Shown: piece after piece, positions 44,873-64,000 of the stretch
How positions within the stretch are numbered: position 1 is the first letter of the stretch
How the letters are laid out: every line of letters begins with the position of its first letter
NCBI RefSeq assembly: GCF_002571385.2
Contig: NW_019217802.1
Coordinates: 370,551-434,550, forward strand
DNA length: 64,000 bases
DNA from: Stylophora pistillata
Lineage: Eukaryota
Direction: 5' to 3'
Position numbers and translations under genes: made by a program
Notes under the pieces: generated by a model
The model's database searches: none
What the model saw: only the letters and a program-made list of their open reading frames with translations
Told to the model about the DNA's origin: nothing

Positions 44873-45728
44873 GATTGGAACAATTTTCAGTGAACAGAGC
44901 ACTTTATCTTTGCCGAGCTAAACAAAGAGGACGATAATTCTGTTGCGGAACACACAATCTTGTAAAGTAAATGACTAAATCTTGCTGTATTACCTCAAGA
45001 TACATTTGAAATTATGCAGCAAAGTGGGAATACTTCAACAGAAAACTTTCCTTAGAGCAATTTTCACGGTAATTTTTCTTTGAATAATTTTACTCCAACT
45101 AAAATATCCCAGCTTACATGGGTTAGTANNNNNNNNNNNNNNNNNNNNNAGTTCACTGCGCGCGGCGAGTTTCATTATCAGGTGTTTCGTTAGTTTGAAA
45201 GCAGGAGACAGAAACATTTTATGGTGTCCCTAGAGTTCATTTCTTTCCGATACACCGAGTGCTCATTAAAATACAGATACCTGAAGCTCAATTAGACGAC
45301 ATTGCATTGGAAGGGATCATGTAATATTTGTAAAGACAACCTTATGAAATAAAATTTTTTTAACAGTATCTAACACTTCTTTGACTGGGCCTATTTTTTA
45401 CTCTAATCCAGACAAATTCTCCTGAGAAAAAGAATTTTTCTAAAATGCTCGTTCACTGGGAGACATCCGTGCAAACGCCCACTTTGCCACGAACTTTTCG
45501 AAAATGCTGACCAACTGCACTTTGTTTATTTTGGGACCACCTTTTGTTCCACCCACCCCTACTTAAATCCAGGGTTAGTAATAATGCAAACATGGATGTA
45601 AGTGGAGCTTAGATGAGGAAGTGAGCAATGGTTATCCATTTGAACACAAATTTTGTGTTGTTTTGATGCAAGTTTTCCTTTGGGTTGAAATTTTTCTTGC
45701 CAGTTTATTTGAATTTGGTATTCTATAC

Positions 45729-45905
45729 ACCGCTTTCATAAATGGCTGCTGGATTGATATTCTTTTGTTTAAATTCAAATTAGCCTCACTAGCCTCGCTT
45801 GAGATAATGCATTCTTTTGAATTTTGAACTGGAGAACGAGGCCAGAAAGGCTAATTTGAATTTAAACAAAAGAATATCAATCCGGCAGCCATTTATGAAA
45901 GTGGT
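45729..45905. mobile_element. Foldback MITE, 177 bp with about 55-bp TIRs (second copy at 48883-49059)
   Basis: accgctttcataaatggctg...aattagcct / aggctaatt...cagccatttatgaaagtggt. It is absent at the homologous site near 43030. Confidence 0.85.
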
Positions 45906-46139
45906 CATTTGTCTACAATAATGTTTAGAGATCTGGGACCACATACTTGAAGGATCAATTTTAAACTAGTTTTGAATTAAAAACAAAATGGAAAAAATTT
46001 GAGACACAACATCTTCTATATGTATGCATCTCAAAGTATTTTTAACCTCAAAAGGCTTTTTTGTTGTCCATGAGTATTGTATCAACAGTGTAATCAAATT
46101 TCAATTTCTTACAATCATGTTTTTCATTGATCACCCAAG

Positions 46140-46271
46140 GATCAGACCCATTGATCTCCCAAAGTGCTGTTACAAAACTGGCGGTTTTTACAGCAGTAAC
46201 ATTTTGTCTGGTGGCACTCATGAAGTGGCATTTTAGTGGAGGAGTGTGCAAAAGCAAGGCGAGATTAGATG
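46140..46271 (+). pseudogene. Orphan RDH transmembrane exon, near-identical to 49294-49425
   Basis: 45906-46467 matches 49060-49620 with only a few substitutions, then diverges. No downstream SDR exon occurs before the gap. Confidence 0.7.
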
Positions 46272-47677
46272 GTAAGAGTGTATATAAGCAGGAATAATAA
46301 GATTAGATGGTAAGAGTGTATGTAAGCAGGAATAATAATGATGAAAGAATGCACTCTACAGGTTTATTTTCAACTCTCCACAAATTGAGTTGTTGTAACT
46401 CATCATCAAAGGCTTTTTCTCTTGATTTCACAGTGTTTGTGGGCACTGTTTTATTTTGCATCATGAAGGGAATATCACTTATGAGGATAATGTAGCGTCT
46501 ATGTTTGGAATTTCGCCTTCTCAAATCCCAAAGAACCTCACTTGGGAGGAAGAGAAGTACCTCTGTTGAAAGTATCGTTGCCTTCACTTGCTGAACGCTA
46601 AGATCGCTTAGACGTGCCACAGTCCTGCATTTAGAACCGTTTGTTGCCATGATTCAAGACAAACACGCCGAACATTAAGATAAGGTTCTGCAAGACTAAA
46701 TTTAATGACGTAATTGCCACACCTTCATGGTTAAAATGCGCTAAATATAAATATAGGAATGAAACAACTCAAATGCAAATTCCGTTCAATTGAAATTCCC
46801 ATTTGGGCTCCAATTTATCTTCTCCCTGAAGATTATGTTCTTTACAGGAAATAAATAAATAAATAATGTATAAGTAAACTGCGTTAGTTGATCATATTAG
46901 AGTAAGAATATTCATCCTTTTCAAAAGTATTGAAATATTTTTGTTGCACCTGAACATAATTTTGGCTTTATTTATTATAAGAACGACTGAAGTAATTAAA
47001 TACAAACATACCACGCTTCGAAATAAGCCTTACCATTAATCGTAGTTTATATATCCAATTTGTCACTGAGAACATTCCGACAGAACATGGTTGATTCACT
47101 TCAAGACATATGTATCTGCTACATGAAAACTTCCAAGTTGAACGAAAATTATGCTCTGGCTGTCGAACCAGGTTACATTGCAAGACAGATATTTATCCCT
47201 CGGATTGAAGACTCACCTGTTGTATTCATTCATTCTCGATGCACAATTAAGGACGGAAATTTTCAGCGCAGAATCACTTGCGGATTTCACGTCTCGAGGA
47301 AAACGTTTTTGTTTGGTGTATTCGAAGGTTGCATTTGCCAAGATCCTCGAAATTTAGTACAATGGTGCAGTGAAATCAGCTCTAAAGGTAAGCGGCATGG
47401 ACGACGTGTTCTTACATGCTGTTAGAAATTGGGGCAAATCTGGTCATTTAGTTTCACCCGCATTGGATGCTTCAAGACGAACCCTGCGGACAAAATTCCG
47501 TTCGGTTTACCCGTTAGAAATGATTGTTTTTATCTATGAAGATTTCGCAGAAGGAAAAGTGTCTGGTAAATTCGTAGTCAAGGGATGTTACGTAATGTAT
47601 TTCAATTTTGTTTTTCCAACACTAGAGCAAAAGTGTTGGGATTGATATCAACGTTTGTGAATCCTGGAGAACTCAAA

Positions 47678-48605
47678 NNNNNNNNNNNNNNNNNNNNNNN
47701 NNNNNNNNNNNNNNNNNNNNNNNNNNNNNNNNNNNNNNNNNNNNNNNNNNNNNNNNNNNNNNNNNNNNNNNNNNNNNNNNNNNNNNNNNNNNNNNNNNNN
47801 NNNNNNNNNNNNNNNNNNNNNNNNNNNNNNNNNNNNNNNNNNNNNNNNNNNNNNNNNNNNNNNNNNNNNNNNNNNNNNNNNNNNNNNNNNNNNNNNNNNN
47901 NNNNNNNNNNNNNNNNNNNNNNNNNNNNNNNNNNNNNNNNNNNNNNNNNNNNNNNNNNNNNNNNNNNNNNNNNNNNNNNNNNNNNNNNNNNNNNNNNNNN
48001 NNNNNNNNNNNNNNNNNNNNNNNNNNNNNNNNNNNNNNNNNNNNNNNNNNNNNNNNNNNNNNNNNNNNNNNNNNNNNNNNNNNNNNNNNNNNNNNNNNNN
48101 NNNNNNNNNNNNNNNNNNNNNNNNNNNNNNNNNNNNNNNNNNNNNNNNNNNNNNNNNNNNNNNNNNNNNNNNNNNNNNNNNNNNNNNNNNNNNNNNNNNN
48201 NNNNNNNNNNNNNNNNNNNNNNNNNNNNNNNNNNNNNNNNNNNNNNNNNNNNNNNNNNNNNNNNNNNNNNNNNNNNNNNNNNNNNNNNNNNNNNNNNNNN
48301 NNNNNNNNNNNNNNNNNNNNNNNNNNNNNNNNNNNNNNNNNNNNNNNNNNNNNNNNNNNNNNNNNNNNNNNNNNNNNNNNNNNNNNNNNNNNNNNNNNNN
48401 NNNNNNNNNNNNNNNNNNNNNNNNNNNNNNNNNNNNNNNNNNNNNNNNNNNNNNNNNNNNNNNNNNNNNNNNNNNNNNNNNNNNNNNNNNNNNNNNNNNN
48501 NNNNNNNNNNNNNNNNNNNNNNNNNNNNNNNNNNNNNNNNNNNNNNNNNNNNNNNNNNNNNNNNNNNNNNNNNNNNNNNNNNNNNNNNNNNNNNNNNNNN
48601 NNNNN
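47678..48605. other. Assembly gap (others at 2237-2247, 43466-43892, 45129-45149)
   Basis: Runs of N. Confidence 1.
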
Positions 48606-49336
48606 GCCAGTTTTGTAACAGCACTTTGGGAGATCAATGGGTCTGATCCTTGGGTGATCAATGAAAAACATGATTGTAAGAAATTGAAATTTGATTACAC
48701 TGTTGATACAATACTCATGGACAACAAAAAAGCCTTTTGAGGTTAAAAATACTTTGAGATGCATACATATAGAAGATGTTGTGTCTCAAATTTTTTCCAT
48801 TTTGTTTTTAATTCAAAACTAGTTTAAAATTGATCCTTCAAGTATGTGGTCCCAGATCTCTAAACATTATTGTAGACAATTGACCACTTTCATAAATGGC
48901 TGCCGGATTGATATTCTTTTGTTTAAATTTAAATTAGCCTTTCTGGCCTCGTTCTCCAGTTCAAAATTCAAAAGAATGCATTATCTCAAGCGAGGCTAGT
49001 GAGGCTAATTTGAATTTAAACAAAAGAATATCAATCCGGCAGCCATTTATGAAAGTGGTCAATTGTCTACAATAATGTTTAGAGATCTGGGACCACATAC
49101 TTGAAGGATCAATTTTAAACTAGTTTTGAATTAAAAACAAAATGGAAAAAATTTGAGACACAACATCTTCTATATGTATGCATCTCAAAGTATTTTTAAC
49201 CTCAAAAGGCTTTTTTGTTGTCCATGAGTATTGTATCAACAGTGTAATCAAATTTCAATTTCTTACAATCATGTTTTTCATTGATCACCCAAGGATCAGA
49301 CCCATTGATCTCCCAAAGTGCTGTTACAAAACTGGC
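48606..49336. repeat. Large palindrome (arms about 335 bp) centred on the foldback MITE and abutting a gap
   Basis: 48606-48939 is the reverse complement of about 49003-49336. The ORF track shows MHLKVFLTSK... on both strands. Confidence 0.9.
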
Positions 49337-50861
49337 GGTTTTTACAGCAGTAACATTTTGTCTGGTGGCACTCATGAAGTGGCATTTTAGTGGAGGAGTG
49401 TGCAAAAGCAAGGCGAGATTAGATGGTAAGAGTGTATATAAGCAGGAATAATAAGATTAGATGGTAAGAGTGTATGTAAGCAGGAATAATAATGATGAAA
49501 GCATGCACTCTACAGGTTTGTTTTCAACTCTCCACAAATTGAGTTGTTGTAACTCATCATCAAAGGCTTTTTCTCTTGATTTCACAGTGTTTGTGGGCAC
49601 TCCTTTATTTTGCATCATGAAAACCAAAAAAAAGAAATGAAATGAAATCTGTCACTGTCACAATCTGCATACCTTTGAGCAGAAATCAGTTATAAAGTTG
49701 CATCAAGGTTTTGCTGACTGTGCCATTTTCTTACAGGTAAGACTGTTATTGTAACAGGGGCTAACACTGGAATAGGAAAGGAGACTGCTTTGGACCTAGC
49801 CAAGAGGGGTGCAAAAGTCATTTTGGCTTGCCGAGATGAAAAGAGGGCCACAGATGCAGCAAAAGAGATTATTGCAGACACTGGAAGTGATAAAGTCCTT
49901 GTTAGAATTGTTGACCTGTCCTCCTTTAAGTCAGTGAGAGCCTTTGCTAAACTCATTAATGAAACAGAAGAAAGACTGGACATTCTTGTGAACAATGCAG
50001 GACTTGGAAGAAGTTACACGTTGACTGAGGATGGATATGAAAGTGTTTTCCAAGTAAACTATCTCAGCCATTTTCTTCTGACTCTACTTCTGTTGGAAAA
50101 AATGAAGAAATCAGCACCAAGTCGCATTATCAATGTCTCATCCATGGCACATGAAGAAATGAATGCTGATCTCCAGCTTGATGATTTTAAATTGTCCAAG
50201 GAGAACTTTGATCCATTTCAACGCTACGCTCAATCAAAGTTGGCACAGGTGGTGTTCACAAAAGAATTAAGCCGAAGACTGGAAGGTGAGTGAAATGTTG
50301 TGGGGAACAGATCACCAACCATCAAAAAATAGAAATAGTATGTTGCTACCACATGTTTGACTGTAATGACTTGCTATCCTTTTCTACAACATAAAATTCA
50401 CTTTAAGTGCAAGTATATTATATTTTAATCAGTAACAAAAACTATATTCTCAAGTTGTACTGGCAGATGTTAATGAGAGTAACAAGGATGTGATTTGATG
50501 TATATTAGCCACAGCAGCTGATAAATTAGTTTTATGTCTCCATTTAGGAACTGGAGTGACAGTTTATGCTCTTCATCCTGGTGTTGTCTCATCAGACATT
50601 TGGCGAAACTTGGAGATTTTGAAGAAACCATATATCAGACCATTTGTAATGCTGGTGATGTTTCTGTTCTTCAAAGACTGCAAGCAAGGGGCACAGACTA
50701 CCATCTACTGTTCAGTGGCCGAAGAGCTGGAAGGTGTCTCGGGCCTTTATTACAGTGATTGCAAAGTCAAGGAGAGCAATAAATTGGCAAAAGATCCTGG
50801 TTTGGCAAAGAAGCTGTGGGATGCAAGTGAGAGGATCACTGGAGAAAGTTGGAGAGATTAA
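49294..50861 (+). CDS. Retinol dehydrogenase 11/12/13-like SDR, copy A (first exon not visible)
   Basis: Exons 49294-49425 (TM), 49737-50285 and 50548-50861. TGANTGIG Rossmann motif, NNAG, catalytic YAQSK and HPG are present. Confidence 0.9.
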
Positions 50862-51891
50862 GAATTTGATGATGAACATTTTTGTAACTTGTTTTTTGGT
50901 GCATTTCTCTAGTTACATTTATGGAGATGTATACAGTGTGGTGTCAGTAGAAGTGTTACATGCTATAGGCAATCTATAAGTAAATGCCAATTACTGGTAT
51001 AGAGGATGATAAGAATTTATATCTTTAGTCTAGTTATTTTGTACTATTTACAAATAATTATTTCTACATTAAAGTACATTAACAAGGAGAGACAGGCAAA
51101 TTGAATAACACAAGTAGTGAAAAGCAAAATGTGCACAGTGACCAAAGTAGCTTAAGCTTTGGAGTTGGTCACTGCCACATACAATTAATTGGCATGAACA
51201 TGTACATTGTAGGCATTTACATGACAGTAAAAAACAAAAGCAAACTACACTCAGGAAACAAATTGAGTGTTTAAAAGATACATTTTGTATTGCTTGTAGA
51301 AACAATAACAATTATTATGGATGTCTTTATCACTAAATTTGGAGAAAAACTTAGCTGGTTGGGGTTGAATTTGTACCCATCTCTTACCTTGTTTGGTGGC
51401 TGTAGTGTATTGCATTACCACTATTTGGGCATTTCTCAATTATGCTTTCATTAAATCTACTGTCCTTGTATTTAGAGTAAAATTAGTACCAGTAATTGTG
51501 AGTATTGTATGGTAAAAAAGCTATCTTGATCATTGAGTTATAGACAGTTAAATCAGAGCAATTAGAGAAGTCACGACCTATGAATATTTTACTGTGGCCC
51601 ATACCCTATCAGGTCAAGTAATGGAGTGTCCCTAACTTGCTTCAAGTGGAGAGTGAAAAAAAAGAGGAACCAAAGAGAAGTGGTGTCCAGGAAGCAACAG
51701 CTTATCTCAATTTTGGCCAAAAAATCCTTGAGATTGCAGGGCATCACTTTATTTTACTCTTGCTAAACAACTTGAGAACGTCTGTATTTAGGAGTATTTT
51801 GAGGCGTGACTTCTCTCATTCCCAGTGCCTATCGATTCTGACTGGCTCCGACGTCGTGGGCGCATCGTGGAGCGACCCTGGATATCCCACT

Positions 51892-53352
51892 ATGGCGGTG
51901 TATTTTGTTGATTGCGCCGTGTTTCTTTCGCTCTCATGCTGCTTTGAGGTAACTTACGGTGAAAAAGTAAAGAAAGGTTAGTCTACACGCAAATTGTGCT
52001 CCGATCAGTGTTAAAACTAACCCAATGAAAATATGGTATCTCTGGAGCATAGCGTGACCTGCACAGCTCGGGCTTTCGTGTTGCCTTTCGCTGGAGTTTG
52101 AATACTGATGCGCGTGTTTGCTGAAAGGAGGATGCCTTTGTCTCGAGGTGCTCTGTTTAACGCAAATTTCAACTGGACGTATATTGTCTGCCAAAACACA
52201 AACCACTTTTTGGCATTGACCGAGTCAGTCTCTAGATTTCTGTAGCAAACTCTTACCGTATCTCAGATATCGGTCAAATGAAAACTCGTTGACCTCGATC
52301 TTTTTAACGGAAGAAAAAGGAAAAATCGAGTACTCTCCAATTTTATCATTAAGTCCATCGGCTCTCTGTTTTTCCGTTAAGTGTGAGAATCTTTGTATGG
52401 TGCAAAACCAATACAATGACGGTAAGTATTGATAATGTGTTTCGAATCACAGAAGGCGAGCTTCTTAACGCCGAAAGTATTTCTACAAGAATGTTATTTG
52501 TCACAGCGTCAACAGTCTGTCTGGCGGTGATTATTAAGTGGTACTTTGGTGGAGGAGTGTGCAGAAGCAAGGCAAGATGAGATGGTAAGAGTACATGGTG
52601 AAAAAAAATCATTTAATTTGCCTAGCACTGATGATGATGGCCATTTGGGGTGGAGGTTATAATTATTTACTAATCCTTGAGTAAATCCCGCACTAATGTT
52701 TGACAAAGGCTTCAAAAGTGCATGCTGCCATGTGTAAGTATTTCATCATAAGTGTCACGGGAAATTTTTCCTCTGTCTCGATCTGACTGGATGTAGCTAT
52801 ACAGTTTCGAAGTCAATTGGTGGTCAAAATGACAAGCCCTATTGTGGCTGTTTGATGGCTGGTGGCAATTTATGAGCTTGGCAATATTTTTCTTGGTTTA
52901 GAAACTCAATTTTATGCTAACTCTGCCTTTTTTAGGTAAGACTGTTATTGTAACAGGGGCTAACACTGGAATAGGAAAGGAGTCTGCTTTGGACCTAGCT
53001 AAGAGGGGTGCCAAAGTCATTTTGGCCTGTCGAGATGAACAGAGAGCCACAGATGCAGCAAAGGACATTATAGCTGAGACTGGAAGTGATAAAGTCCTTG
53101 TTAGAATTTTAGATCTGAATTCCTTTGAGTCTGTGAGAGCCTTTGCTAAGATCATCAGTGAAACAGAAGAAAGACTGGACATTCTTGTGAACAATGCAGG
53201 TGAGTGAGTAAGAGTAAGAGACTGGCAACCCAAAAATTGTAATATGAAAACAAAAATTCAAAGGCAAACTCTTTGTTTAAAAAGTAACACTGCCTGGTTA
53301 GCTCATGTTGTAGAGTACCAGACTGCCATGTGGGAGATGAAGCCCCAGACCA

Positions 53353-53388
<36 letters not shown>

Positions 53389-55151
53389 TGTGTTGCCTTT
53401 GCTATGACATCTGCAAATGGTTAGACTGATATTCTAGTCTTCTTGGACAAGGCCAAAAAACTGTAGGCCCTGTTTCCTTCATCTTCTCTGTGCTGGTTAG
53501 GAGGGGACGTTAAAGAACCCACACACTTATCACATAGAGTAGGGAATGTAGCTCCCAGTGTTGTGGTCTGGCCTTGATTCTGATAATAAGGAATCCACTG
53601 CAATTGGCTCGGCTGAAGTGGTCTCTCTACCTAAGAAATTAGGTGAAGCTAAATAAATAAATTATAAGCTGATGAAAATCACTTACTCATTACTCCATAA
53701 GAATACATGGCTAACATCTTATTTCTCTCTCTAGTATTATGAGAATAAAGGAAGCAGTTGCTAACATGACAAACTCTTGATTGTAAAACAAATTCTCCCT
53801 GTTGGTACTATAAATATTTAAAGAATAGTATGGAGAATATATGTGCACCTATTATTTTACAGGGATTGGACTGGGAGCCCCATATAGGCTGACCAAGGAT
53901 GGATATGAAAGTGTTTTTCAAGTAAACTATCTCAGCCATTTTCTTCTGACTCTACTTCTGTTGGACAAAATGAAGAAATCAGCACCAAGTCGCATTGTAA
54001 ATGTTTCATCCCTGGCACACGAACAAAAGATTGCTGCTCTCCAGCTTGAGGATTTTAAACTTTCCAAGGAGAAGTTGGATAGTGGATTTGCACGTTATGC
54101 TCAATCAAAGTTGGCTCAAGTGGTTTTCACAAAGGAACTGAGTCGAAGACTGGAGGGTGAGTAAAATGTTTGGGTGTGGTCAGAACAATCAGGTCCAATA
54201 TTATTGCAACATAGAATAGTCCTTTTCCAGACAGTTTGTGTATCAGTAAATTTGGTCTTAAAAATCTCATTGATTTTGGATTTGAGAACAATTATGGCAG
54301 ACAGTCAACTGGCTGAACATTAAACTTAGAGCCTGGATTCAATCTGACGTGTCTGAAGTTAAAACAGTACTGTACATTGATGTAGCTAGCTTTTTATTTT
54401 TCTGGGCTCAGAGGAAGCCAGAAATCCTTTACTGTCTTAAAGACCTGCATGGCTTTGAAATTCAAGATGTAATGGTTACTCTTATGTGCACTTCTTTTGC
54501 AGAAACTAGCAAAGACAGAGCACCTTTCATAAGTTTTAAAATATGTGGCAGTAAATTCAAGAAACATAAAACACACACACAGACTCATATGTGGCAAAAT
54601 TATATATGATCCATATTTGAATGAAAGTGAACTCTATAAATTGTAGTGTAAAGTTAATGTAAGGGTTCCACTTAAAGTCTCGGAAGAGAATTGAATAGAT
54701 TTGAATGGTGGTAAAGCAAGTCACATGGAGATTGTTACTATGGGAACTTATAATAATTAAGTTTGTTTTCAATTGTCACTAAGGATCAGAATGAGGTATC
54801 AAGATGCCTCCTATTTATGATTCTTCTCTTGTTTTAGGAACTGGAGTAACAGTGTACGCCCTTCATCCTGGTGGTGTCAATTCAGACATTTGGCGAAACT
54901 ATAATTTTCTGGAGAATCCATTCATTAAACCATTTGTAATGCTGATTGCATATTTGTTCTTCAAAGACTGCAAGCAAGGAGCTCAGACATCAATCTACTG
55001 TTCAGTAGCAGAAGAGCTGGAACGTGTCTCGGGTCTTTATTACAGTGATTGTAAAGTCAGAGAAGGCAATAAACTGGCAAAAGATCCTGGTTTGGCAAAG
55101 AAGTTGTGGGAAGTTAGTGAGAGGATCACTGGACAAAGCTGGAAATATTAG
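51892..55151 (+). pseudogene. Retinol dehydrogenase-like SDR, copy B; in-frame TGA at 52578-52580 (pseudogene, null allele or assembly error)
   Basis: Exons 51892-51976 (signal-peptide-like), 52453-52584 (TM), 52936-53199, 53863-54156 and 54838-55151. TGANTGIG, NNAG and YAQSK are intact. The TGA stands where paralogs have TTA. Confidence 0.75.
53288..53660 (+). mobile_element. tRNA-derived SINE, related family with a different 3' tail
   Basis: Shares the head (ggttagctca) and the central block gaccaacactcagggtcttaaaataa...attctagtcttct with the two copies above. Ends in (taaa)n. Confidence 0.75.
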
Positions 55152-55424
55152 ACATTCTAGTTTGTGCATGTACATTTTTTTAAGGACCATTACTAGGAAC
55201 CAGGCTCTCATTAGATATGGCACTGTTAAACAAGCAGCAAAGCTGTGAGAGGTCTCTGATGGCATGTTGACCTTTCATGCTTCGGGTCAGAACCTTTGCT
55301 GATTCTCCAGTTGCCAATCACAGCTTGCTTACAATTAAGCCATTACTTAGTAACATGCTTTTTCTTTCATGTCTCCAATGCATTATCCCTCAAGTAGGTT
55401 ATAGGGATAGGCATTGCATATCTT

Positions 55425-55954
55425 AGGAAGAAGAAAGCGAGCAAGCGCCTTTATGCTCTTAGGATGCTTGGGAAGGCAGGAGTCCCCCGGACTGATTTAG
55501 TGCTTATTTATTGCTCCCTAATACGGTCGGTCTTGGAGTACGCACCCCCTGCCTGGGCATATCTTCCTGAGCACCTTAACGAGCTCGTCTAGTCAGTACA
55601 ACGGAAAGCACTTAGGATAATCTTCCCCTGTCTTGACTATGGATCTGGCCTTAGTGTGAGGCTCGGCTGTAACCCCTCGTGGTTCGCAGAGCTGAACTGT
55701 GTTCCAGGTTCATGACTGGGGCGAGGAGGACTGAACCTATAAGTTCCATCCTTCCTTGCACCACAGAGGTGCATCATGGTTATTCTTTGCGAGCCCGTAT
55801 TGTTCGAGTAGATCGGCATAGAGGGGCCACAGACAGACTTAATAATTTTGTTACTGTTCGATATCAATAAGATGTATATTTAATGTTGTACCTATGTAAT
55901 ACTGACCCATACTGCAATTCAGCCTTAGCTGCAAGAGTATGCAATTAAACGATC

Positions 55955-55987
<33 letters not shown>
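55425..55987 (+). mobile_element. 5'-truncated CR1/L2-group LINE fragment
   Basis: Translates as KKASKRLYALRML...IYCSLIRSVLEYAPPAW...V*SVQRKALRIIFP, the C-terminal part of a CR1/L2 RT ORF. Ends in a (CAAT)n tail. Confidence 0.8.
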
Positions 55988-56249
55988 CCTGACTAGACAT
56001 AAAGCTATGTAAGGTTTACTGTAATTATTACCTTATATTTAACTTATTTAAGTTAAACAACTTTGGCAAATTTTTGTTAGGGGCCTTCTTGAAAGAAAAC
56101 TGTTTCATCAATTCTGTTCCCAGCTGTGGCCTGCATTAAGCATTCACTCTGAAAGCTGCCGCATGTTATTTCAGACTTTAATTGAGTTTGGAGTGAGATT
56201 GAGAACTGAGAACCAAACGTTTCGTCCTGAACGAAAGCAGGAGAGCACT

Positions 56250-57430
56250 TCGGAAAGTTATCGCCATTAAACAACACGAACAACAACAACTCGGTGAAAA
56301 AATAACATCTCAGTTCTCACCCGAGGCAGCATCCCAAATCCGCTCCCAAAGATATCTGGCATACAACACCGCCAGAAATCTACATAGCAAAATGTTCTTT
56401 AAACTATTGGACAACCTCAGAAACGATAACACCAGTAACTCCACCTCAGAAGATAACCCACCCGACCAAATAAACACAACTTCCAACTGCGAAAACATCG
56501 TTGACACAAACAACGCTCATTCCCCAAACGAAACAAAGCAAGTCACCGACCTCACATGTAACCTTAACGCTCAAGAAATCAACCTCTTATCCAAAGGCCC
56601 CAAGTTCAGCCACTCTCCTGAAGTAAATGAACAGAATCACGGGTATCAATATTGTATCCTGCCGACTAGCCAACCAAATACGATGGAAACACTACCGCGA
56701 GTCAAACCCCCAAGAGTCAGATTTTCTTACCTATCTACAAACCCGACACATCTACAGACCCCAGTCTAACAACGAACTTGAAAACAAGCTGCAGAGAATT
56801 CATCATAAACACCACCTCACTCTCAAAGCACTACAACCTCAAAAGAAATGGTCGAACATCGATGGCACAGACAGGAAAACTATTGAAGAACTCAGAGAGA
56901 AGAACTACGTATACCTTCCCAGCGATAAAGGCACCGAGTTCTGCGTCATACAACAAGACACGTACACCCAAGTCACCCTTGATCACCTCAGTGATGCCAA
57001 CACCTACCAAAAAGTACCCCGCGTGTCAGCCAAGACAGTCGAAAGTAACTGAGTTAACACAGCCTGGAAGAAAATCTGCCTACAAAATAAAATTCCTCCC
57101 TTTGTCCAAAAAAGCTTCCTTGCGTCAAACACAGACCTGTCCAGATTCTACCATCCAGTCAAGACCCACATAGCAGGTCCCGATGTTAAAATACGACCTA
57201 TCGTATCCAACATCAATGGACCCACCTAACGCATTTCATGGCTTCTTGCCAGCGCCCCAAACTGATGCTAAAAAATGTCCCAGCTCATTTAGAAAGCAGT
57301 CTCGAACTCATTAGATGTATCCAAGCCTTATGATGTATCTTATCCCTGATGATGCCGTTGATCGGCGAAAGCTCGGATTTTTAAAACATTTTACTTTTTA
57401 CAGCAGTGTAAGGCTTCATTCGATTAGTTT
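56250..57430 (+). mobile_element. Decayed Penelope-like retroelement
   Basis: Frameshifted motifs LNAQEINLLSKGPKF, YLPSDKGTEFCVI and RFY..VKTH....KIRPIVSNINGPT are typical of PLE RT. A hammerhead motif lies at the 3' end. Confidence 0.8.
57342..57378 (+). ncRNA. Minimal type I hammerhead ribozyme
   Basis: atcc-CTGATGA-t-gccg-ttgat-cggc-GAA-agct-c-ggat: stem I atcc/ggat, stem II gccg/cggc, palindromic stem III AGCT, cleavage triplet CUC. Confidence 0.8.
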
Positions 57431-58288
57431 GTTTATATTTTAACAATGCTGCTGAAGGACAACATGAACAGATTATTAAGTTTGAAGTGTTATTTGATAT
57501 TTAGCTCACACATATTACATAAGAGTTTTGTATTTGTGAAGTAGAAGATAGATGGTAACCTTGTTATAAAAAAGGCTGTCTTTGTCTTAGACATTGCTTG
57601 TGGTCATGTTATGTGGTTTAGGAAGAATAGTTGTTTATACAGAAAACATCTTTCGATATCACAGTTGATTAGTTTACCGCTATTAACATTGCACTGGAGA
57701 CGGTGGGTTGATGAAATGTTTGTCCGTAATCAATACTGTCAAAAACTCCCTTCACGAAATTTGGTCTATCTACCTCTCACTCGCCAGACTAGACTTGCTC
57801 ACAAATTAAGTCGCGCTTTTGAGCGCGTAGCGCGTAGTGCGAGTCCTACCAACAGAAAACCATGCGAACGACTTTGAGAAAGTCTATCGCCAGACATGCA
57901 CCTGCAGTGCAGGTAAGCCGGTGTAACCTCGGAAATTCTTGCTTATCCTATGACAGTGCTTCTTGCGTTGCTGACTTCGCCGACACATTACAAGGGTATC
58001 ACGCAACGCTTCCCTCAAGGACTTACGTGACATCCCAAAAAGATCGCCGCAAAGATTTTTTTTTTTTAGTTGAAATATATTTCACCCCTGAACGACATGG
58101 CTATAGGAAAAAAATATTCTAAACAAGCAACCGTGAAATATTTTTGAGCTGGTACACCTTGAAACAAGAGGCGTTATTTGTACGCTTTTTGTCACCAGAT
58201 ACCCAAATGTATGCAGTCAGCTGGAAGATGTAGTGTCCAATCCCTACTCACTTTGTCGACGCCTGGATTATTGTTAGCAGTAGTTTTC

Positions 58289-61200
58289 ATGGTGATGGCG
58301 CTTAGATGGGAAGTGATCTTCTTATTATTTCTTTCAATCTACCTCTCGGAAATATTTTCATATGCATCTGGTGAGTGTTAACTGTATATTTCGTCTTTGA
58401 AACTTTATTGTATGAACATGATCTGACATGAAGTACTGCCGCCTTAGTACTGTTTCGGCCATAAATCTACAAGCGTTAATTCCTCAAAAACTAATTTTTC
58501 CTTTTTCAACTTTTAACTAAAATCCGGCTTATTTTTGTGGTGAAGATTTGAGTTGGTATATTTTACCAGCAGATCAATCCTTGTATTTGTTTTCAATCGG
58601 TATTTTCTTTAGTAGCATGCCGTAGCCATGCAGCTTGCAGCTGTTACAGATTATGTTAATGACAGCTGACTCATGGGAATTTCGTTAAGACAGAAAATTT
58701 ACTAAGGAAAATATGAAATAATAGATATGATCGGTTAAACTTAAGTCATGAAATGGGAAGCTTAATTAAGATAAGACCTTAAATACATTGATGTGCAATA
58801 TAATACCTAATGAAGCAGAAGACACGTACGTTTTGTCCGAATATTTTGAGAATAATAAAACTAATGAAAAATTCGTGGGCTAGTTTGCAACAAATTACAG
58901 CAGATTAAATCATAGTAATCTAAGGATATATTTTTTTCTGAAACCCAGGTCCCACAACAGATAAGGACTTGAAAATGTAAGAGGTTCTAAATCCTCACCA
59001 GTATTTGTTAATAATTTATGAGTTACACAAACAATGCACAAAAATATCCCTCTTCAATAATCCTATTTAAGCAGTGGAGCAAATTTTTCTGGGCTCTATA
59101 ATGTGATAAAGCTATGCAGAATGTCAGGAGAACAAGACAAAAGCTAATGTTTCCTATGGAAATGTTTCCTGTTAAGAAAAAAAATTGTAGATAAATTAAG
59201 ACAAGAAGTGTACTTACACTTTACTGATGCTAATAATCATTCTAATGTGCACAATGTTCCTACACATCAATTAAGGAGCAGCACCTTGTGAGGATCATCA
59301 CCCAAGGTGTGGCCATTGGGCATCTAGGGGAGAATGCAAGAAAAACGTGAAGTGGATGTCAAAGCACTGCCGATCAACTTGTGGCCTATGTGCGCAAGGT
59401 ACAACCATTGTTACATTTTTGAATGTGGATCTTAACGACAACATGTTTTTCGTTAAAATTGCCCTTTCTGTATAAGATCTTCTAATTAATTCTCAATGCA
59501 TAAAACAATGTTTTGTGTCCAAAAGTAGCTTCAAGAGTTTTCTTGGGATTCATGTCAAAGGAAACAGTAGAACCAAGTTCACTCTAAGAACTGGGTCAAA
59601 TGTAGTGAACATATTAAACATTAAAAGACTCGACAGTCTTTTAGGAGATCTTTCAATTATTGATAAACTTTTACTCAATTTTTTGAGATCTCAAAAATGA
59701 GCCAAAGAATTGACCAAAATGACCTTAGTTTAGACAGTTTGTTGATTTTATGATTTATGTAGAGTATTCATTGGTCAGTCAAGTGGTTCCTCTCGTTACT
59801 CTTCTAATTCAGCTTTTTTTTTACTCGATGATCAAGAAATTATATTTACCATACAATACTCGCAATTACTTATTTTATTTTTACTTTGGACAGTAGATTT
59901 ACAACATGATTGAGTACTAGGAAATGTCCTTACAGTAGTATGGCTGTACTATTACACTACAGTGTACCACATGTAGCAGAATGGAGGAGAGACCATCAGA
60001 TTACACCTGAGCTCGCTTGAACTTTCAATTGTAAACTAGATGAGTGGGATCTCATTCAAATCCAAGACAACAGCAGATAGATCATTTTTAAACAAAATGG
60101 TGTTGAATCCATACCTCTTTTAATTTCCAGTTAGTTGAAGCTTGCTAAAAAATTCCAAGAAAACAGAAAATCCACGTAATAATTAATTCAATTGTATTGT
60201 CATGTGTAAAACCCTCCAATGATACCTTAACTTTTTCTTGTCTCTCAATCTAGCTAATGTTCATGATCTGTACAAACAAGCCAAAATTGAGATACATGGA
60301 GCTTTTTTTCTGTTCTTTGGAATTGTTGGCACAGTTGTGGTGGGAGTGTTCACTAAAATACATTTTGAAGGGCCATCTTGTCCAAGTTCGGCAAAGATGA
60401 GAGGTACCATATATGATTCCTTATAGTTTATACAACGACAAATCTCAAGAATTTGATAAAACCCAATCATTAGTGAGGATTTCTTACTGGTACTGCAGGT
60501 TTCTGCTGTAAACCTTTCCACTTCTAAGATCTGATTGTTAAATTCTCTCTTCTAGCTGTTAGACATTTCATTCTAAATCAGTTATAAGAATTTGGTGTTA
60601 GATCAAGATATAGCAACTTCTACCTCATAAGTTTGAGTATTCTCTTTACCTGTTACCTGTCAATTGGAAATAATTTTTCCCACCACAAGAAATGATTCAA
60701 GACATAATGATTGTTTCTTAAAAGAATGAATTAATCTTTTTTTTGTACAATGTTAGGGAAAACTGTGGTGATAACAGGAGGAAATACAGGCATTGGCAAG
60801 GAAACAGCAAGAATCTTGGCTTGGAGACAAGCCAGGGTCATCATCGTCTGCAGAAACATCACAAAGGGCTTACAAGCTGCTGCAGAAATCATTGAAAACA
60901 CTGGAAATAGAAACATAGAGGTGAAAAAAGTGGACTTAGCTTGTTTTAAGTCAGTACAAAGATTTGCTGAAGAGATAATTGAGGAAGAAAAAAGAGTGGA
61001 TGTTCTGATAAACAATGCTGGCTACTTTGGGCCATACTGTACAACAGTTGATGGGCTTGAAAACACTATTCAAGTCAATTACCTTAGTCATTTCTTGTTG
61101 TCACATCTTCTCCTTGATAAACTCAAAGCCAGTTCACCCAGTCGTATTATTAATGTGTCATCAAGGCAGCATGCTGAGGTGTCACAAATTGATGTTGGCA

Positions 61201-62778
61201 AAGTCCTATCACAAAAGAAGGAAGGTTATGGAATTATCAAAGCCTACAATAATAGCAAATTATGCCAAGTTCTTTCCACCATTGAGATGAGCAAGAGAAT
61301 CAAAGGTAATTTAATTTTTTTTGTGGTTGACACTTACTTAACTGATTTTGATATTAGCCTCTAGGCTTTACCCCTTCTCTACCACAGCCAGACACCCTCT
61401 CCAAACACCCTCTCCAAACAGCGGCCATATTGAATTTTTTCTCAACAACCACAGAAAATTTATTCAGGTGATCATGAACAACCAGGCTCTGTAATGTTTT
61501 TTATTTTAGGACATAAATATTATGTATACATCCTTGGTCATTGGTTGGCAAACATAAGACATACATAAACTTCCTTGCTAGGGAAAGGGTTAAAAATAGT
61601 TCTGGTAGATGTATTAAAAGATTTTTGCATGATTATGAATAAAGGGTAAAGGTAAAGTATAATCTGGAGCCAAAGCTTATCCAAGTTTCTCTAGCATGTA
61701 GCAACTGGGAGTATCACTATTTCCCCCTTGGATGGGATCCCAGTTCAACCCAAAATTACCCCCAGCATTTCACCAGGCAATTTGTTGACAATTTGTTGGT
61801 ACCCATCAATACTCTTGGGTGGGTTAGAGGCACTGTGAGAGTAGAATGTCTTGTGCAAGAACTCAATGCACCTACTCAGCCAGCTCTCCAACCAGGACCT
61901 CTATAACTGGAGTCCAGTGCACTGACCATTAGACTACTGCTCCTACTACATGGGTAATAACATTTTTATGTACCATAAATCCTCTCATAAGCCTCCCCCT
62001 CTATTAAAACACCCCCTCTTTAGAGGAAGAAATTTATTAAGCCCTCCCACCCCTCCCCCCTCAAAAAAACAAAAAATAATTCAAAATAGCACTCCATGTC
62101 AGTAAGTACAATAAATTTATTCAAGTACTGTACTTTTATTCTGTCATTTAAAATTGATTATGGTGATTGATTGATTAATGTTATCATGTTGGCATTGATA
62201 GAATACAGTATGAGGAAATTACAGAGTGATGCTATAAGTGTCACGTGGCTTGACAAGGTTCATTGAGAGGGATAGATCGTAAAATTGAGTTCTTTATTGA
62301 GTTCTAAATTAATTAGTCCCCACTCCTAATATGTCAGCCCCCTCAAAGTACCTGAAAATAAATAAGCCCCCCCCCCCAGGGGTTTATTAGAGGATTCACA
62401 GTACAATATATTGTGAATTACATGTGTGAATATAGTCTTATTATTGTTGATCTTTTTCTTTGTTTAGGGTCAGGAGTCACCGTGAATGTTCTTCATCCTG
62501 GGGTTGTTGGAACTGAAATTACAAGGAATTTTAGAATTCTTCAGATGTGGATTATAAGACCACTCCTTTGGCTTGTGTCATATTTCTTTTTTAAAACACT
62601 GAACAGTGGAGCTCAGACATCCATCTACTGTGCAGCTGCAGAGGAACTCAAGGATGTTTCTGGGAAATATTTTAAGGATTGTGCAATGGTTGAGTACAGT
62701 GATTTGGCCAAAGATGAAAAAATAGCAGAAGAACTATGGAAGGAAAGCAAAAAGCTTACAGGATTAGACAATCAATGA
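58289..62778 (+). CDS. Signal peptide - ShKT domain - TM - retinol dehydrogenase-like SDR fusion protein, copy C (404 aa)
   Basis: Exons 58289-58370, 59276-59398, 60254-60403, 60757-61305 and 62468-62778, all GT-AG and phase 1, 1215 nt with no internal stop. ShKT: CEDHHPRCGHWASRGECKKNVKWMSKHCRSTCGLC. TM: GAFFLFFGIVGTVVVGVFT. SDR motifs TGGNTGIG, NNAG, YNNSK, HPG. Confidence 0.85.
61640..61945 (-). mobile_element. Degenerate tRNA-SINE (CORE-like central block); partial relatives near 850-960 and 37805-37925
   Basis: The block gcactgtgagagtagaatgtcttg recurs as gtgagagtaaagtatctt (about 853) and in reverse complement as acactttactctcacagtac (about 37817). Degenerate tRNA-like end. Confidence 0.55.
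61971..62403. mobile_element. Tc1/mariner-pogo-like MITE in the last intron of RDH copy C
   Basis: Imperfect TIRs taccataaatcctct / agaggattcacagta with TA ends. Internal taagccc-Cn repeats. Confidence 0.6.
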
Positions 62779-63272
62779 CCTCTTCAATGGAATCACACCA
62801 AGTTGTCTTTGTAGGATGTTGTTTTCAAAGTTATGTCTGTGCTTGGTTTTCCTCAAAGAGGTCAGTGCAGTTGTTTGTCTCTAGTTAACCCTCTAAGTTC
62901 TTGGAGCTGATTCTTAATTTTCCCTTCTGGCTGGCATTCATTTCATTTTAAATAAGTTAAGAGAATTTGATTCTTGATTGAGATTGTGCAAATAATTAGT
63001 AGCTGCAGTTTAAAATTTTTATCACTTTTGGGTTTTAAGGATAAAAGTTTTCTAAACCTTTTTTTCATTCATGAAAACTATTTGTGTAATATTGATAGAA
63101 GGGAGAATTGAAAATAAGATCTTAGGAGTTAAATAAGTGAAACTGATTTCAAGGGACTCAAGGGTTGTTGCCCAGTCAAAAAAGGGAAATTGATGCTTGT
63201 CATGTAAAAGACTCGTGCTTCAAGTGCCAGTTTTCTGCTTGGTTAATGTTGAACTGAAGACTCATTGCTGAA

Positions 63273-63608
63273 ATAATTAACAATTATTCTTTGAAATCGA
63301 GGTGAATAGTGGCTAAATATTTACCGTGCCACAAAGCGGTGCAGTAAATATTCCCAAAAGCCCCTATTCACCAAGATTGAAAATAATTGTTTTAGTATAT
63401 ACACACGAAGTCATCTCAACAAAATTAAAAGGAAGCCATTTAAAGGCAATTTCTGCTTCTGAAACTTTAGCGAAATGGGAGTTTACACCTGCTATTTTGT
63501 TTTTCACATTATCCACTCACTCGGATGTGTACATTGTTGATTAGCCGGAGATAGCGAACCAATCAGATTGCTTGAAATGCCAAGATCACTGAGTGTGTAT
63601 ATACTAAT
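63273..63608. repeat. Interspersed repeat with an internal palindrome
   Basis: aattatt...ggtgaatag...aaatatttaccg / cagtaaatatt...ctattcacc...aataatt forms an imperfect hairpin, ending in gtgtatatactaat. Confidence 0.5.
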
Positions 63609-64000
63609 TGGAAATTTTCTCTGGGAGCCCCTACTGTGTTGAAATATGGGGCTTTCAAGTTTTAGGGTGTTGGATATGTGGGGTAAATCAGTGGTCATAG
63701 ATCAGCACAAATTTAATAGACGCAACGAGACAATAAATACTGACTGGATCTTGATTGAGGGTGTAGAAAAAAACACAAGAAAGTAAAATATAACTGGTAA
63801 GAACAGGGAAACATGAGTGAGATATGAGATGATTGATTTTGGTTTTGCATCTTGTTGGTTGAGAGGGGTTTCTAGGCCAATTATAGAGCAAGTTGAAACA
63901 AAAGTTTCGTGTTACTTTTGGTAATCAGCTGAGAATATCACCAGAGACAAGTTCAGGATTTCCATGATCTGTAAGGATGAAAATTTTCCATTATCTAAGT

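Follow-up and report, generated by a model that had tools for sequence, protein, structure and literature searches.

Vertebrate RDH11 and RDH12, together with RDH13 and RDH14, are microsomal NADPH-dependent retinal and aldehyde reductases, and the first two start with their membrane anchor. ShKT modules are attached to many enzymes, where their role is largely obscure; in MMP23, a membrane-tethered enzyme of the secretory pathway with one such module, it blocks the channel Kv1.3. Astacins, tyrosinases, peroxidases such as C. elegans MLT-7, prolyl-4-hydroxylases and certain "oxidoreductases" all carry ShKT modules added by domain shuffling, and in every ShKT enzyme described to our knowledge the module and the enzyme reside in the same compartment. 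The Stylophora pistillata gene reported here joins an ShKT module, most likely also added by shuffling, to a short-chain dehydrogenase (SDR) of the RDH11/12 kind. Unlike the ShKT-decorated enzymes listed above, which are secreted or lumenal throughout, and unlike MMP23, in which the ShKT module and the catalytic domain share the lumenal or extracellular side, the membrane would here divide the two domains, and the enzyme class also differs from that of MMP23.

The gene lies near the end of the window, that is, the whole stretch of 64,000 nucleotides that was analysed. It has five exons, with all introns of the GT..AG type and all junctions in phase 1. The exon lengths add up to 1215 nt, equal to 404 codons plus a stop by arithmetic and by exon-by-exon translation, and the stop-free 404-residue reading frame proposed in the earlier note agrees with lengths, splice sites and translations alike. 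The features are as follows:

58289..58370, plus strand: exon 1, 82 nt with the ATG start, signal-peptide-like; 27 codons and one base, ending in phase 1
58371..59275, plus strand: intron 1, 905 nt, GTGAGT..AG, RNA-seq depth 0 in all four runs
59276..59398, plus strand: exon 2, 123 nt, one complete ShKT domain, symmetric phase 1-1
59399..60253, plus strand: intron 2, 855 nt, weak donor GTACAA, retained in some polyA RNA
60254..60403, plus strand: exon 3, 150 nt, with a conserved juxtamembrane linker (NVHDLY..), the transmembrane (TM) helix and, ahead of the Rossmann fold, the GPSC..AK stretch
60757..61305, plus strand: exon 4, 549 nt, the SDR Rossmann core (adh_short, E 1e-26)
62468..62778, plus strand: exon 5, 311 nt including the TGA stop, the C-terminal SDR part with HPG and a hydrophobic lid segment
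62779..63300 at least, plus strand: 3' UTR, with contigs and reads continuous on the same strand

Expression and splicing were followed in four RNA-seq runs (X1, X12, X21 and X24) from four studies. The joint 58370/59276 is present in one contig of X1, in 4 reads of X24 and in 9 reads of X21, and the joint 59398/60254 in one contig of X12, 4 reads of X24 and 1 read of X21, both exactly as had been predicted from the DNA. The joints 60403/60757 and 61305/62468 were also recovered, the latter in all four runs. RNA reads extend about 75 nt into exon 1 from its joint, and the depth at 57888-58275 is zero. Transcripts that always skip the ShKT exon, named in the earlier note as the outcome that would speak against the fusion, were not seen, as spliced reads and contigs include exon 2; none of the four runs lists a joint from exon 1 to exon 3, at a low depth from which rare skipping could escape.

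The product of exon 1 has a hydrophobic core of 11 residues (VIFLLFLSIYL, mean Kyte-Doolittle 2.9) followed by the small residues S-Y-A-S, of which S-Y-A provides small residues at -3 and -1. It matches the N-terminus of the Orbicella orthologue, and a similar N-terminus is found in all orthologues. Exon 2 matches the Pfam ShK profile PF01549 over positions 1-37 of 37 (E 9.2e-13, 49 bits, against a curated cut-off of 20.9 bits) with the cysteine spacing C-x6-C-x8-C-x10-C-x3-C-x2-C, and the six-Cys exon of 123 nt is present just as it had been described. Searches were run with single exons or with full-length orthologues; queried as single exons, the ShKT and SDR parts give both Pfam families that the earlier note had asked for. 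That the ShKT exon had escaped the open reading frame track is plausible, since no start codon occurs in the ShKT frame ahead of the internal GTG at 59347. Exon 2 is the sole occurrence of an ShKT cysteine pattern in window positions 45000-64000. It is 90% identical to its counterpart in Orbicella, 77% in Acropora and 64% in Actinia, and the dN/dS ratio against Orbicella is 0.058 for the ShKT exon and 0.082 for SDR exon 4; judged from these ratios, the constraint on the ShKT exon equals that on the catalytic core, and both are under purifying selection. The two RNA variants in exon 2, at 59334 and 59346, are silent third-position changes.

The SDR part shares with vertebrate RDH11, RDH12, RDH13 and RDH14 the TGxxxGIG motif, the CR of strand 2, the NNAG motif and the N-S-Y-K set, and the best named matches are RDH12-like and RDH13-like proteins at about 45-50% identity. 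The motifs of a classical SDR are all found, with TGGNTGIG, NNAG, the Asn of QVNYL, the Ser of NVSS and YNNSK, so that the glycine-rich and YxxxK motifs are as intact as had been claimed. All hexacoral members carry N-S-[S/A]-Y-K at the aligned columns (Ser-Ala in P0407) together with intact cofactor motifs. The conserved Arg after strand 2, in the CR motif, is the sole pointer to a probable preference for NADP(H). A Foldseek search with the AlphaFold2 model of the Orbicella orthologue (mean pLDDT 90) matched NADPH-binding SDRs, namely LPOR and 3rd5; a sequence search of the PDB returned no solved structure of RDH11-14, with 3rd5 and LPOR structures as the best matches.

The TM segment in exon 3 is the 17-mer AFFLFFGIVGTVVVGVF with a Kyte-Doolittle value of 2.54, flanked by two basic and two acidic residues before and three basic and one acidic residue after, which amounts to a weak positive-inside bias. 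As in RDH11 and RDH12, it is a lone N-terminal membrane helix followed by a G-x-x-C..K..GK stretch, and the AlphaFold2 model of the Orbicella orthologue has a single helix over residues 65-105. RDH11 has an N-terminal anchor and an otherwise cytosolic chain (PMC5133129). The type I topology suggested earlier agrees with this orientation, and an ShKT domain outside or in the lumen fits, since a domain with three disulfides needs an oxidising compartment; the placement itself, with the ShKT domain lumenal or outside and the SDR cytosolic, is predicted from hydropathy, the weak flanking-charge bias and the RDH11 orientation, and cleavage of the signal peptide is likewise expected from hydropathy, flanking charges and the RDH11 analogy. 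Unlike RDH11 and RDH12, which start with the anchor, the window protein begins with a signal peptide, a disulfide domain of 35 residues and a linker, so that about 55 of its residues would lie across the membrane from the SDR. The linker between the ShKT domain and the TM helix lacks a dibasic cleavage site, and the ShKT domain is tethered. ShKT domains have a two-helix fold with the disulfides C1-C6, C2-C4 and C3-C5; in the Orbicella model, short helices occur at residues 35-56, where the ShKT part has a moderate pLDDT of 61-69.

The layout of signal peptide, ShKT domain, TM helix and SDR was found in Orbicella, Acropora, Actinia, Nematostella and jellyfish (the Rhopilema clade), and the ShKT exon is conserved in all four of these anthozoans, the comparison that the earlier note had called for. 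The full-length orthologues with both PF01549 and PF00106 are:

Orbicella faveolata XP_020603405.1/406.1: exon 4 identity to the window gene 86%
Acropora palmata XP_074630991.1: Acropora exon 4 identity about 75%
A. millepora XP_029205188.2: Acropora exon 4 identity about 75%
Actinia tenebrosa XP_031570430.1: exon 4 identity 63%
Rhopilema esculentum XP_065057606.1: jellyfish clade

The five-exon layout is also present in Orbicella, Actinia and Nematostella. Unlike the hexacoral orthologues, the jellyfish-clade gene is a single intronless reading frame, contained whole in one metatranscriptome contig, and the catalytic Tyr is missing in all ten jellyfish-clade members sampled, while the cofactor motifs are kept. 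Catalysis is therefore not the sole conserved function of the family, and the loss of Tyr hints at a non-catalytic role in that clade. Several jellyfish-clade members of 328 residues (P0390 and others) were considered as an isoform lacking the ShKT domain, and this was rejected: the gene caller starts at an internal Met in these cases, since contig L026 has the signal peptide and the ShK domain in frame upstream.

The architecture had been taken as unrecognised, and here the earlier note went too far: RefSeq and UniProt already contain it for Orbicella, Acropora, Actinia and Rhopilema, with both ShK and adh_short in the precomputed Pfam lists, under the mere label "retinol dehydrogenase 12-like". 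Conjectural, too, is the coupling of binding across the membrane to redox chemistry that the earlier note proposed, and no toxin activity is indicated. Reviews do count "oxidoreductases" among the enzymes bearing ShKT (PMC5793123). Our literature search for ShKT or ShK joined to a retinol or short-chain dehydrogenase found no paper on the fusion. The fusion is real, ancient and undescribed in the papers found, and its novelty is below the earlier estimate and falls short of a new class of system. What it corrects is annotation, as the Nematostella models divide the gene and the RefSeq names conceal the ShKT domain. What it offers is a strongly conserved ShKT domain that the membrane would separate from an NADP(H)-type dehydrogenase, in an arrangement that appears to predate the divergence of corals and jellyfish and in which one lineage lost the Tyr yet kept the ShKT domain, the TM helix and the cofactor motifs. 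It provides a testable handle on non-toxin ShKT function and on retinoid and aldehyde metabolism in cnidarians.

We think it probable that the locus is one gene encoding one type I single-pass membrane protein, a member of a cnidarian-wide subfamily of RDH11-14-type SDRs, and that it works in the following way. A cleavable signal peptide would take the N-terminus to the ER lumen, where the three disulfides of the ShKT domain would form. Through a conserved linker helix the chain would pass into the single TM helix, and the NADP(H)-type SDR would remain in the cytosol, as it does in vertebrate RDH11. The data above demonstrate the gene model, its expression, its conservation and its purifying selection; what the enzyme acts on and what the ShKT domain does, we infer. 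The coral and anemone protein is most likely an active NADPH-dependent reductase of retinal or medium-chain aldehydes, since its catalytic N-S-Y-K set is intact, and the tethered ShKT domain would be a binding module on the lumenal or exoplasmic side, there to position or regulate the enzyme, and not a released toxin.

The reading of the locus as two separate genes, or as an assembly or annotation artefact with a small ShKT gene upstream of an ordinary RDH gene, deserves next to no credence. The 2007 Nematostella annotation does cut the locus in just this way, into a 118-residue ShK model and a partial SDR model, and this genome is rich in ShKT exons (at least 66); however, in three runs the ShKT and TM exons are linked by spliced reads or contigs, an in-frame ATG is lacking from the TM exon, both domains occur together in RefSeq models and in Logan transcript reading frames of 394-406 residues from other species, and the jellyfish-clade frame is continuous. 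The claim of one gene and one mRNA holds on the splice joints, on orthologues with the same domain order and on that uninterrupted jellyfish frame. Intron 2 calls for more attention, as its retention varies among libraries and is dominant in at least one. A polyA contig of 2541 nt in X1 keeps intron 2 alone, with introns 1, 3 and 4 removed, and a spliced exon 2-3 contig is absent from that run; X12 has both forms, with retained pieces at a depth of 6.5-8 against 16.9 at the spliced joint; and in X21, where the intron 2 depth is high, a single spliced read joins exons 2-3, compared with 9 across exons 1-2 and 17 across exons 4-5. The depth in introns 1 and 4 is zero. Read-through from the weak donor reaches a stop at 59473-59475 and predicts a precursor of 93 residues consisting of the signal peptide, the ShKT domain and a tail of 25 residues, so the retained form would encode a secreted ShKT-only product. 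A locus with two outputs, in which regulated retention toggles between the membrane-bound ShKT-SDR and this short peptide as a functional product in some tissues or conditions, nevertheless seems unlikely to us: the premature stop lies far 5' of later junctions, and the RNA may be a poorly spliced, degraded transcript; retention in X24 is just about 6%; the intron reads of X21 share a small number of start positions and are possibly PCR copies; and such a switch is not family-wide, since the jellyfish-clade genes have no introns.

Kv-beta aldo-keto reductases report or use redox state, and the MMP23 ShKT module docks on Kv1.3. By analogy with these, the protein could be a redox subunit of a channel, its tethered ShKT domain docking on the vestibule of a K+ or other channel, at the outer or lumenal face, while the NADP(H)-binding SDR on the cytosolic side signals or exploits redox state, the Tyr-less jellyfish form being a pure sensor or scaffold. 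The strong constraint on the ShKT domain would suit this, as would the K-W pair at the position of the ShK K22-Y23 dyad, kept in the window gene, Orbicella, Acropora, Actinia and Nematostella, and the retention of cofactor motifs in jellyfish-clade members that are 60-88% identical among themselves. We nevertheless consider it quite improbable: the Lys varies in the jellyfish clade (E, D, Q or K, then F), the aromatic-Met pair belongs to the generic ShKT consensus, and an anemone ShKT peptide with the dyad is reported to be inactive on the Kv channels tested (PMC5793123). A broader version would make the protein a transmembrane adaptor and more than an enzyme, whose ShKT domain binds the lumenal or outer face of an ion channel or receptor and whose cytosolic NADP(H)-binding SDR couples that partner to redox or retinoid state, like a Kv-beta subunit approached from across the membrane, with the Tyr-less, intronless jellyfish form as a pure sensor and with regulated intron 2 retention in corals releasing a soluble ShKT competitor; we hold this to be very improbable. 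The single membrane-bound enzyme with a tethered binding module is the reading that we retain.

The named relatives are RDH11-, RDH12-, RDH13- and RDH14-like proteins, and the cnidarian clade lies within this set, among deep branches that are unresolved. In a tree of the exon 4 region, from which tandem paralogue B was excluded because its exon 4 equivalent is divided into two exons, a cnidarian clade (98/93) takes in every ShK-bearing protein, with Orbicella as the sister of the window gene (100/95). Tandem paralogues A and B and window positions 45000-58200 were searched for remnants of a decayed ShKT exon, and nothing above noise came up. Similarity between the ShKT domains was rejected as proof of a single origin in corals and jellyfish for want of discriminating power, the window domain scoring 41-49 bits against jellyfish-clade ShKT domains and 48-55 bits when compared with unrelated ShKT exons from its own genome. 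A single clade for all ShK-bearing rows is not rejected (AU p 0.095), and the tree allows one gain and one loss, or two gains (2 changes). Most likely, the phase 1-1 ShKT exon was gained once through exon shuffling, before the split between anthozoans and medusozoans.

The window gene (58289-62778, + strand) joins a signal-peptide-like segment, a ShKT domain, a TM helix and an RDH11/12-type SDR in five exons:

58289-58370, + strand, exon 1: start codon and signal-peptide-like segment (translation)
59276-59398, + strand, exon 2: ShKT domain (translation, Pfam)
60254-60403, + strand, exon 3: linker and TM helix (translation, hydropathy)
60757-61305, + strand, exon 4: SDR core (translation, Pfam)
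62468-62778, + strand, exon 5: C-terminal part of the SDR and stop (translation)

By sequence inspection all introns are GT..AG and all junctions are in phase 1, and the exon lengths total 1215 nt, that is, 404 codons and the stop. Exon-by-exon translation, with the phases verified by arithmetic and by reading of the split codons, bears out the 404-aa product of five phase-1 exons proposed in the earlier note. Using single exons or full-length orthologues as queries for this gene, we found that exon 2 encodes a complete ShK domain, as had been claimed (Pfam, E 9.2e-13 over the whole profile), and exon 4 matches adh_short (E 1e-26). Exon 1 contains a hydrophobic core of 11 residues followed by S-Y-A-S, and exon 3 a 17-residue segment with a mean hydropathy of 2.54. 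The SDR motifs are indeed intact, with TGGNTGIG, Cys-Arg after strand 2, NNAG, Asn, Ser and Y-x-x-x-K all present. Translation probably starts at the ATG at 58289: no RNA covers 57888-58275, and the N-terminus agrees with the Orbicella one. At 57851-57886 a 36-nt piece stands out by its high RNA depth; it ends loosely on either side, shows a fixed T>A at 57863 in every run, and may be a repeat or else a micro-exon belonging to another transcript.

About one third of the words of the stretch are present in public S. pistillata RNA runs, in keeping with a spliced mRNA. Four runs, each from a different study (X1, X12, X21 and X24), were mapped to 57500-63300, and both joints of the ShKT exon were found exactly as predicted: 58370/59276 in one contig (X1), 4 reads (X24) and 9 reads (X21), and 59398/60254 in one contig (X12), 4 reads (X24) and 1 read (X21). 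The joints 60403/60757 and 61305/62468 are likewise present, and read orientation is consistent with a + strand transcript. The ShKT exon is not always skipped: joints into and out of it are seen, and no skipping joint is listed for the four runs in this region. The two RNA variants seen in this exon (59334 and 59346) are both third-position and synonymous. Within intron 3, RNA depth rises into the thousands for both strands over 60574-60654, a segment that ends loosely at 60614 and 60654 and is probably a repeat also found in highly expressed transcripts elsewhere; it masks the signal, so that retention of this intron is unreadable.

A new observation of this analysis is the selective retention of intron 2 (59399-60253), which lies exactly between the ShKT and TM exons and is partly retained in polyA RNA; no depth is recorded over introns 1 and 4. 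In X1 a single form was assembled, a 2541-nt contig from which introns 1, 3 and 4 are gone and in which intron 2 remains. Both forms occur in X12 (depth 6.5-8 retained vs 16.9 spliced), retention is ~6% in X24, and intron 2 reads in X21 are numerous but have few start positions. The donor is weak (GTACAA), and read-through stops at 59473-59475, giving a predicted 93-aa precursor in which signal peptide and ShKT are followed by a tail of 25 residues. The retained RNA may be translated or may simply be degraded.

A full HMMER scan with exon 4, with Pfam scans of its matches, brought up P0105, a 400-aa protein of the jellyfish clade in which signal peptide, ShK, TM and SDR stand in the same order. 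Named members were collected by word-indexed searches with P0105 and close fragments, plus cluster look-ups. Named members come from Orbicella faveolata (XP_020603405.1/406.1), Acropora palmata (XP_074630991.1), A. millepora (XP_029205188.2), A. muricata (XP_067024005.1) and Actinia tenebrosa (XP_031570430.1), and in a second clade from the scyphozoan Rhopilema esculentum (XP_065057606.1, with nine further clusters). The conservation of the ShKT exon that the earlier note had proposed to look for is found in Orbicella, Acropora, Actinia and Nematostella. Several 406-aa members originate from short Logan or JGI transcript contigs, and the spliced fusion is therefore expressed in other corals too.

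The Orbicella and Actinia genes have the same five exons as the window gene. In Nematostella (L029:6034-12199, DS469524.1), the SDR exons are immediately preceded by ShK and TM exons, which the 2007 annotation divided off as a 118-aa ShK model, leaving an incomplete SDR model of 282 aa; the last SDR exon there has two matches (9333-9683 and 11834-12184), pointing to a local duplication or a repeat in the assembly. The A. muricata isoform X3 (P0380, XP_067024013.1) has its start Met inside ShKT and would be missing the signal peptide and one half of ShKT, which points to alternative 5′ structures of the Acropora orthologue. The jellyfish-clade gene checked (L025:10001-11197) is an uninterrupted 1197-nt ORF, contained entire in a metatranscriptome contig. 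The remaining proteins of this clade were each predicted in one piece from large ENA contigs, a sign that their genes may also be intronless. A retrocopy of an already fused mRNA would fit the one genomic copy checked.

The architecture had been put forward as novel. The arrangement is unusual and the gene model correct, but the combination is already in databases, where named relatives are always called ‘retinol dehydrogenase 12-like’ and precomputed Pfam lists record PF01549 and PF00106 for all of these members. Reviews already name ‘oxidoreductases’ among ShKT-bearing proteins (PMC5793123, PMC10496531); our literature search found no paper pairing ShKT with a retinol dehydrogenase or SDR. 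We regard the pairing of ShKT with an RDH-type SDR as ancient, constrained and membrane-spanning.

By its sequence, the SDR part is a typical relative of RDH11-14, probably of the NADP(H) type. The AlphaFold2 model of the Orbicella orthologue, taken as proxy, reaches a mean pLDDT of 90 and in structure comes closest to NADPH-binding SDRs. RDH11 is anchored by an N-terminal helix with the remainder of the chain cytosolic (PMC5133129), and its N-terminus therefore faces the lumen. Compared with RDH11, the window protein would add a signal peptide and a disulfide domain at that lumenal end, a topologically natural change that would place ShKT where disulfides form. The charges beside the TM helix agree weakly with a lumenal ShKT and a cytosolic SDR, and the linker has no dibasic site, which makes release of ShKT by a convertase unlikely. 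Together with the RDH-type SDR and the RDH11 orientation, these features lead us to infer a type I membrane reductase whose ShKT would stay tethered on the lumenal or exoplasmic side.

Another new observation is that the catalytic Tyr is missing in 10 of 10 jellyfish-clade members sampled (Leu in 7, Phe in 2, Val in 1; P0154, P0105, P0151-P0159, alignments A1 and A2), with the Lys also lost in P0159. These members are 60-88% identical to P0105 and retain the glycine motif, Arg and NNAG; the tetrad is kept in all hexacoral members. The loss hints that the jellyfish-clade protein may not be ‘just an enzyme’. MMP23 is a case of a tethered ShKT acting on a channel within the secretory pathway (PMC10496531). 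Hexacorals, unlike the jellyfish clade, conserve a K-W pair at the position of ShK K22-Y23. A Lys-aromatic dyad is no guarantee of channel block (PMC5793123), and we consider a channel adaptor improbable.

In a maximum likelihood tree of the exon-4 region, a cnidarian clade is supported (98/93); within it, the hexacoral ShK-RDHs form a clade (99/96) with the window gene sister to Orbicella, and the jellyfish-clade ShK-RDHs form another (100/100), with which the ShK-less hexacoral tandem paralogues group (97/90). This topology requires two changes of state; the AU test does not reject a tree that unites all ShK-bearing rows (p 0.095). ShKT sequence similarity does not discriminate between a single and a double gain, and some linker residues after the last Cys are common to both clades. 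We prefer a single early gain, in which exon shuffling brought in a symmetric phase 1-1 exon. Against Orbicella, where dS of ~1 makes the ratios rough, dN/dS of the ShKT exon (0.058) is as low as that of SDR exon 4 (0.082) and below those of the TM exon (0.16) and exon 5 (0.14). Identity of the ShKT domain to the window gene is 90% in Orbicella, 77% in Acropora and 64% in Actinia.

At least 66 ShKT exons and 11 exon-4 matches are present in the S. pistillata genome, and both occur together only in the window gene. Two tandem RDH paralogues lie upstream of it:

near 49.2-50.9 kb: paralogue A
51.9-55.2 kb (51892-55151): paralogue B

A search of the window found no ShKT exon or remnant in either. 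In the ShK-less paralogues of Acropora (363 and 368 aa), a segment resembling a signal peptide still precedes a TM segment, a layout that paralogue B appears to share (signal-like first exon 51892-51958, TM exon 52453-52584); these segments fit an ancestor that would already have had a signal, X, TM layout. In Actinia tenebrosa, a ShK-less RDH paralogue of 345 aa (L024:7367-9243) immediately precedes the ShK-RDH, and the tandem arrangement of the window is therefore shared with sea anemones. The exon-4 equivalent of paralogue B is divided by an extra intron (52938-53201 and 53862-54152), and an in-frame TGA at 52578-52580, where paralogue A has TTA (Leu), may mark a pseudogene, an allele or a sequencing error. 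Near-identical ORF sets (46024-46650, 48600-48764 and 49178-49627), which include the TM exon of paralogue A, flank an N run at ~47.7-48.6 kb; one copy is inverted and adjoins the run, and the sets reflect a segmental duplication or else an artefact of assembly around the gap.
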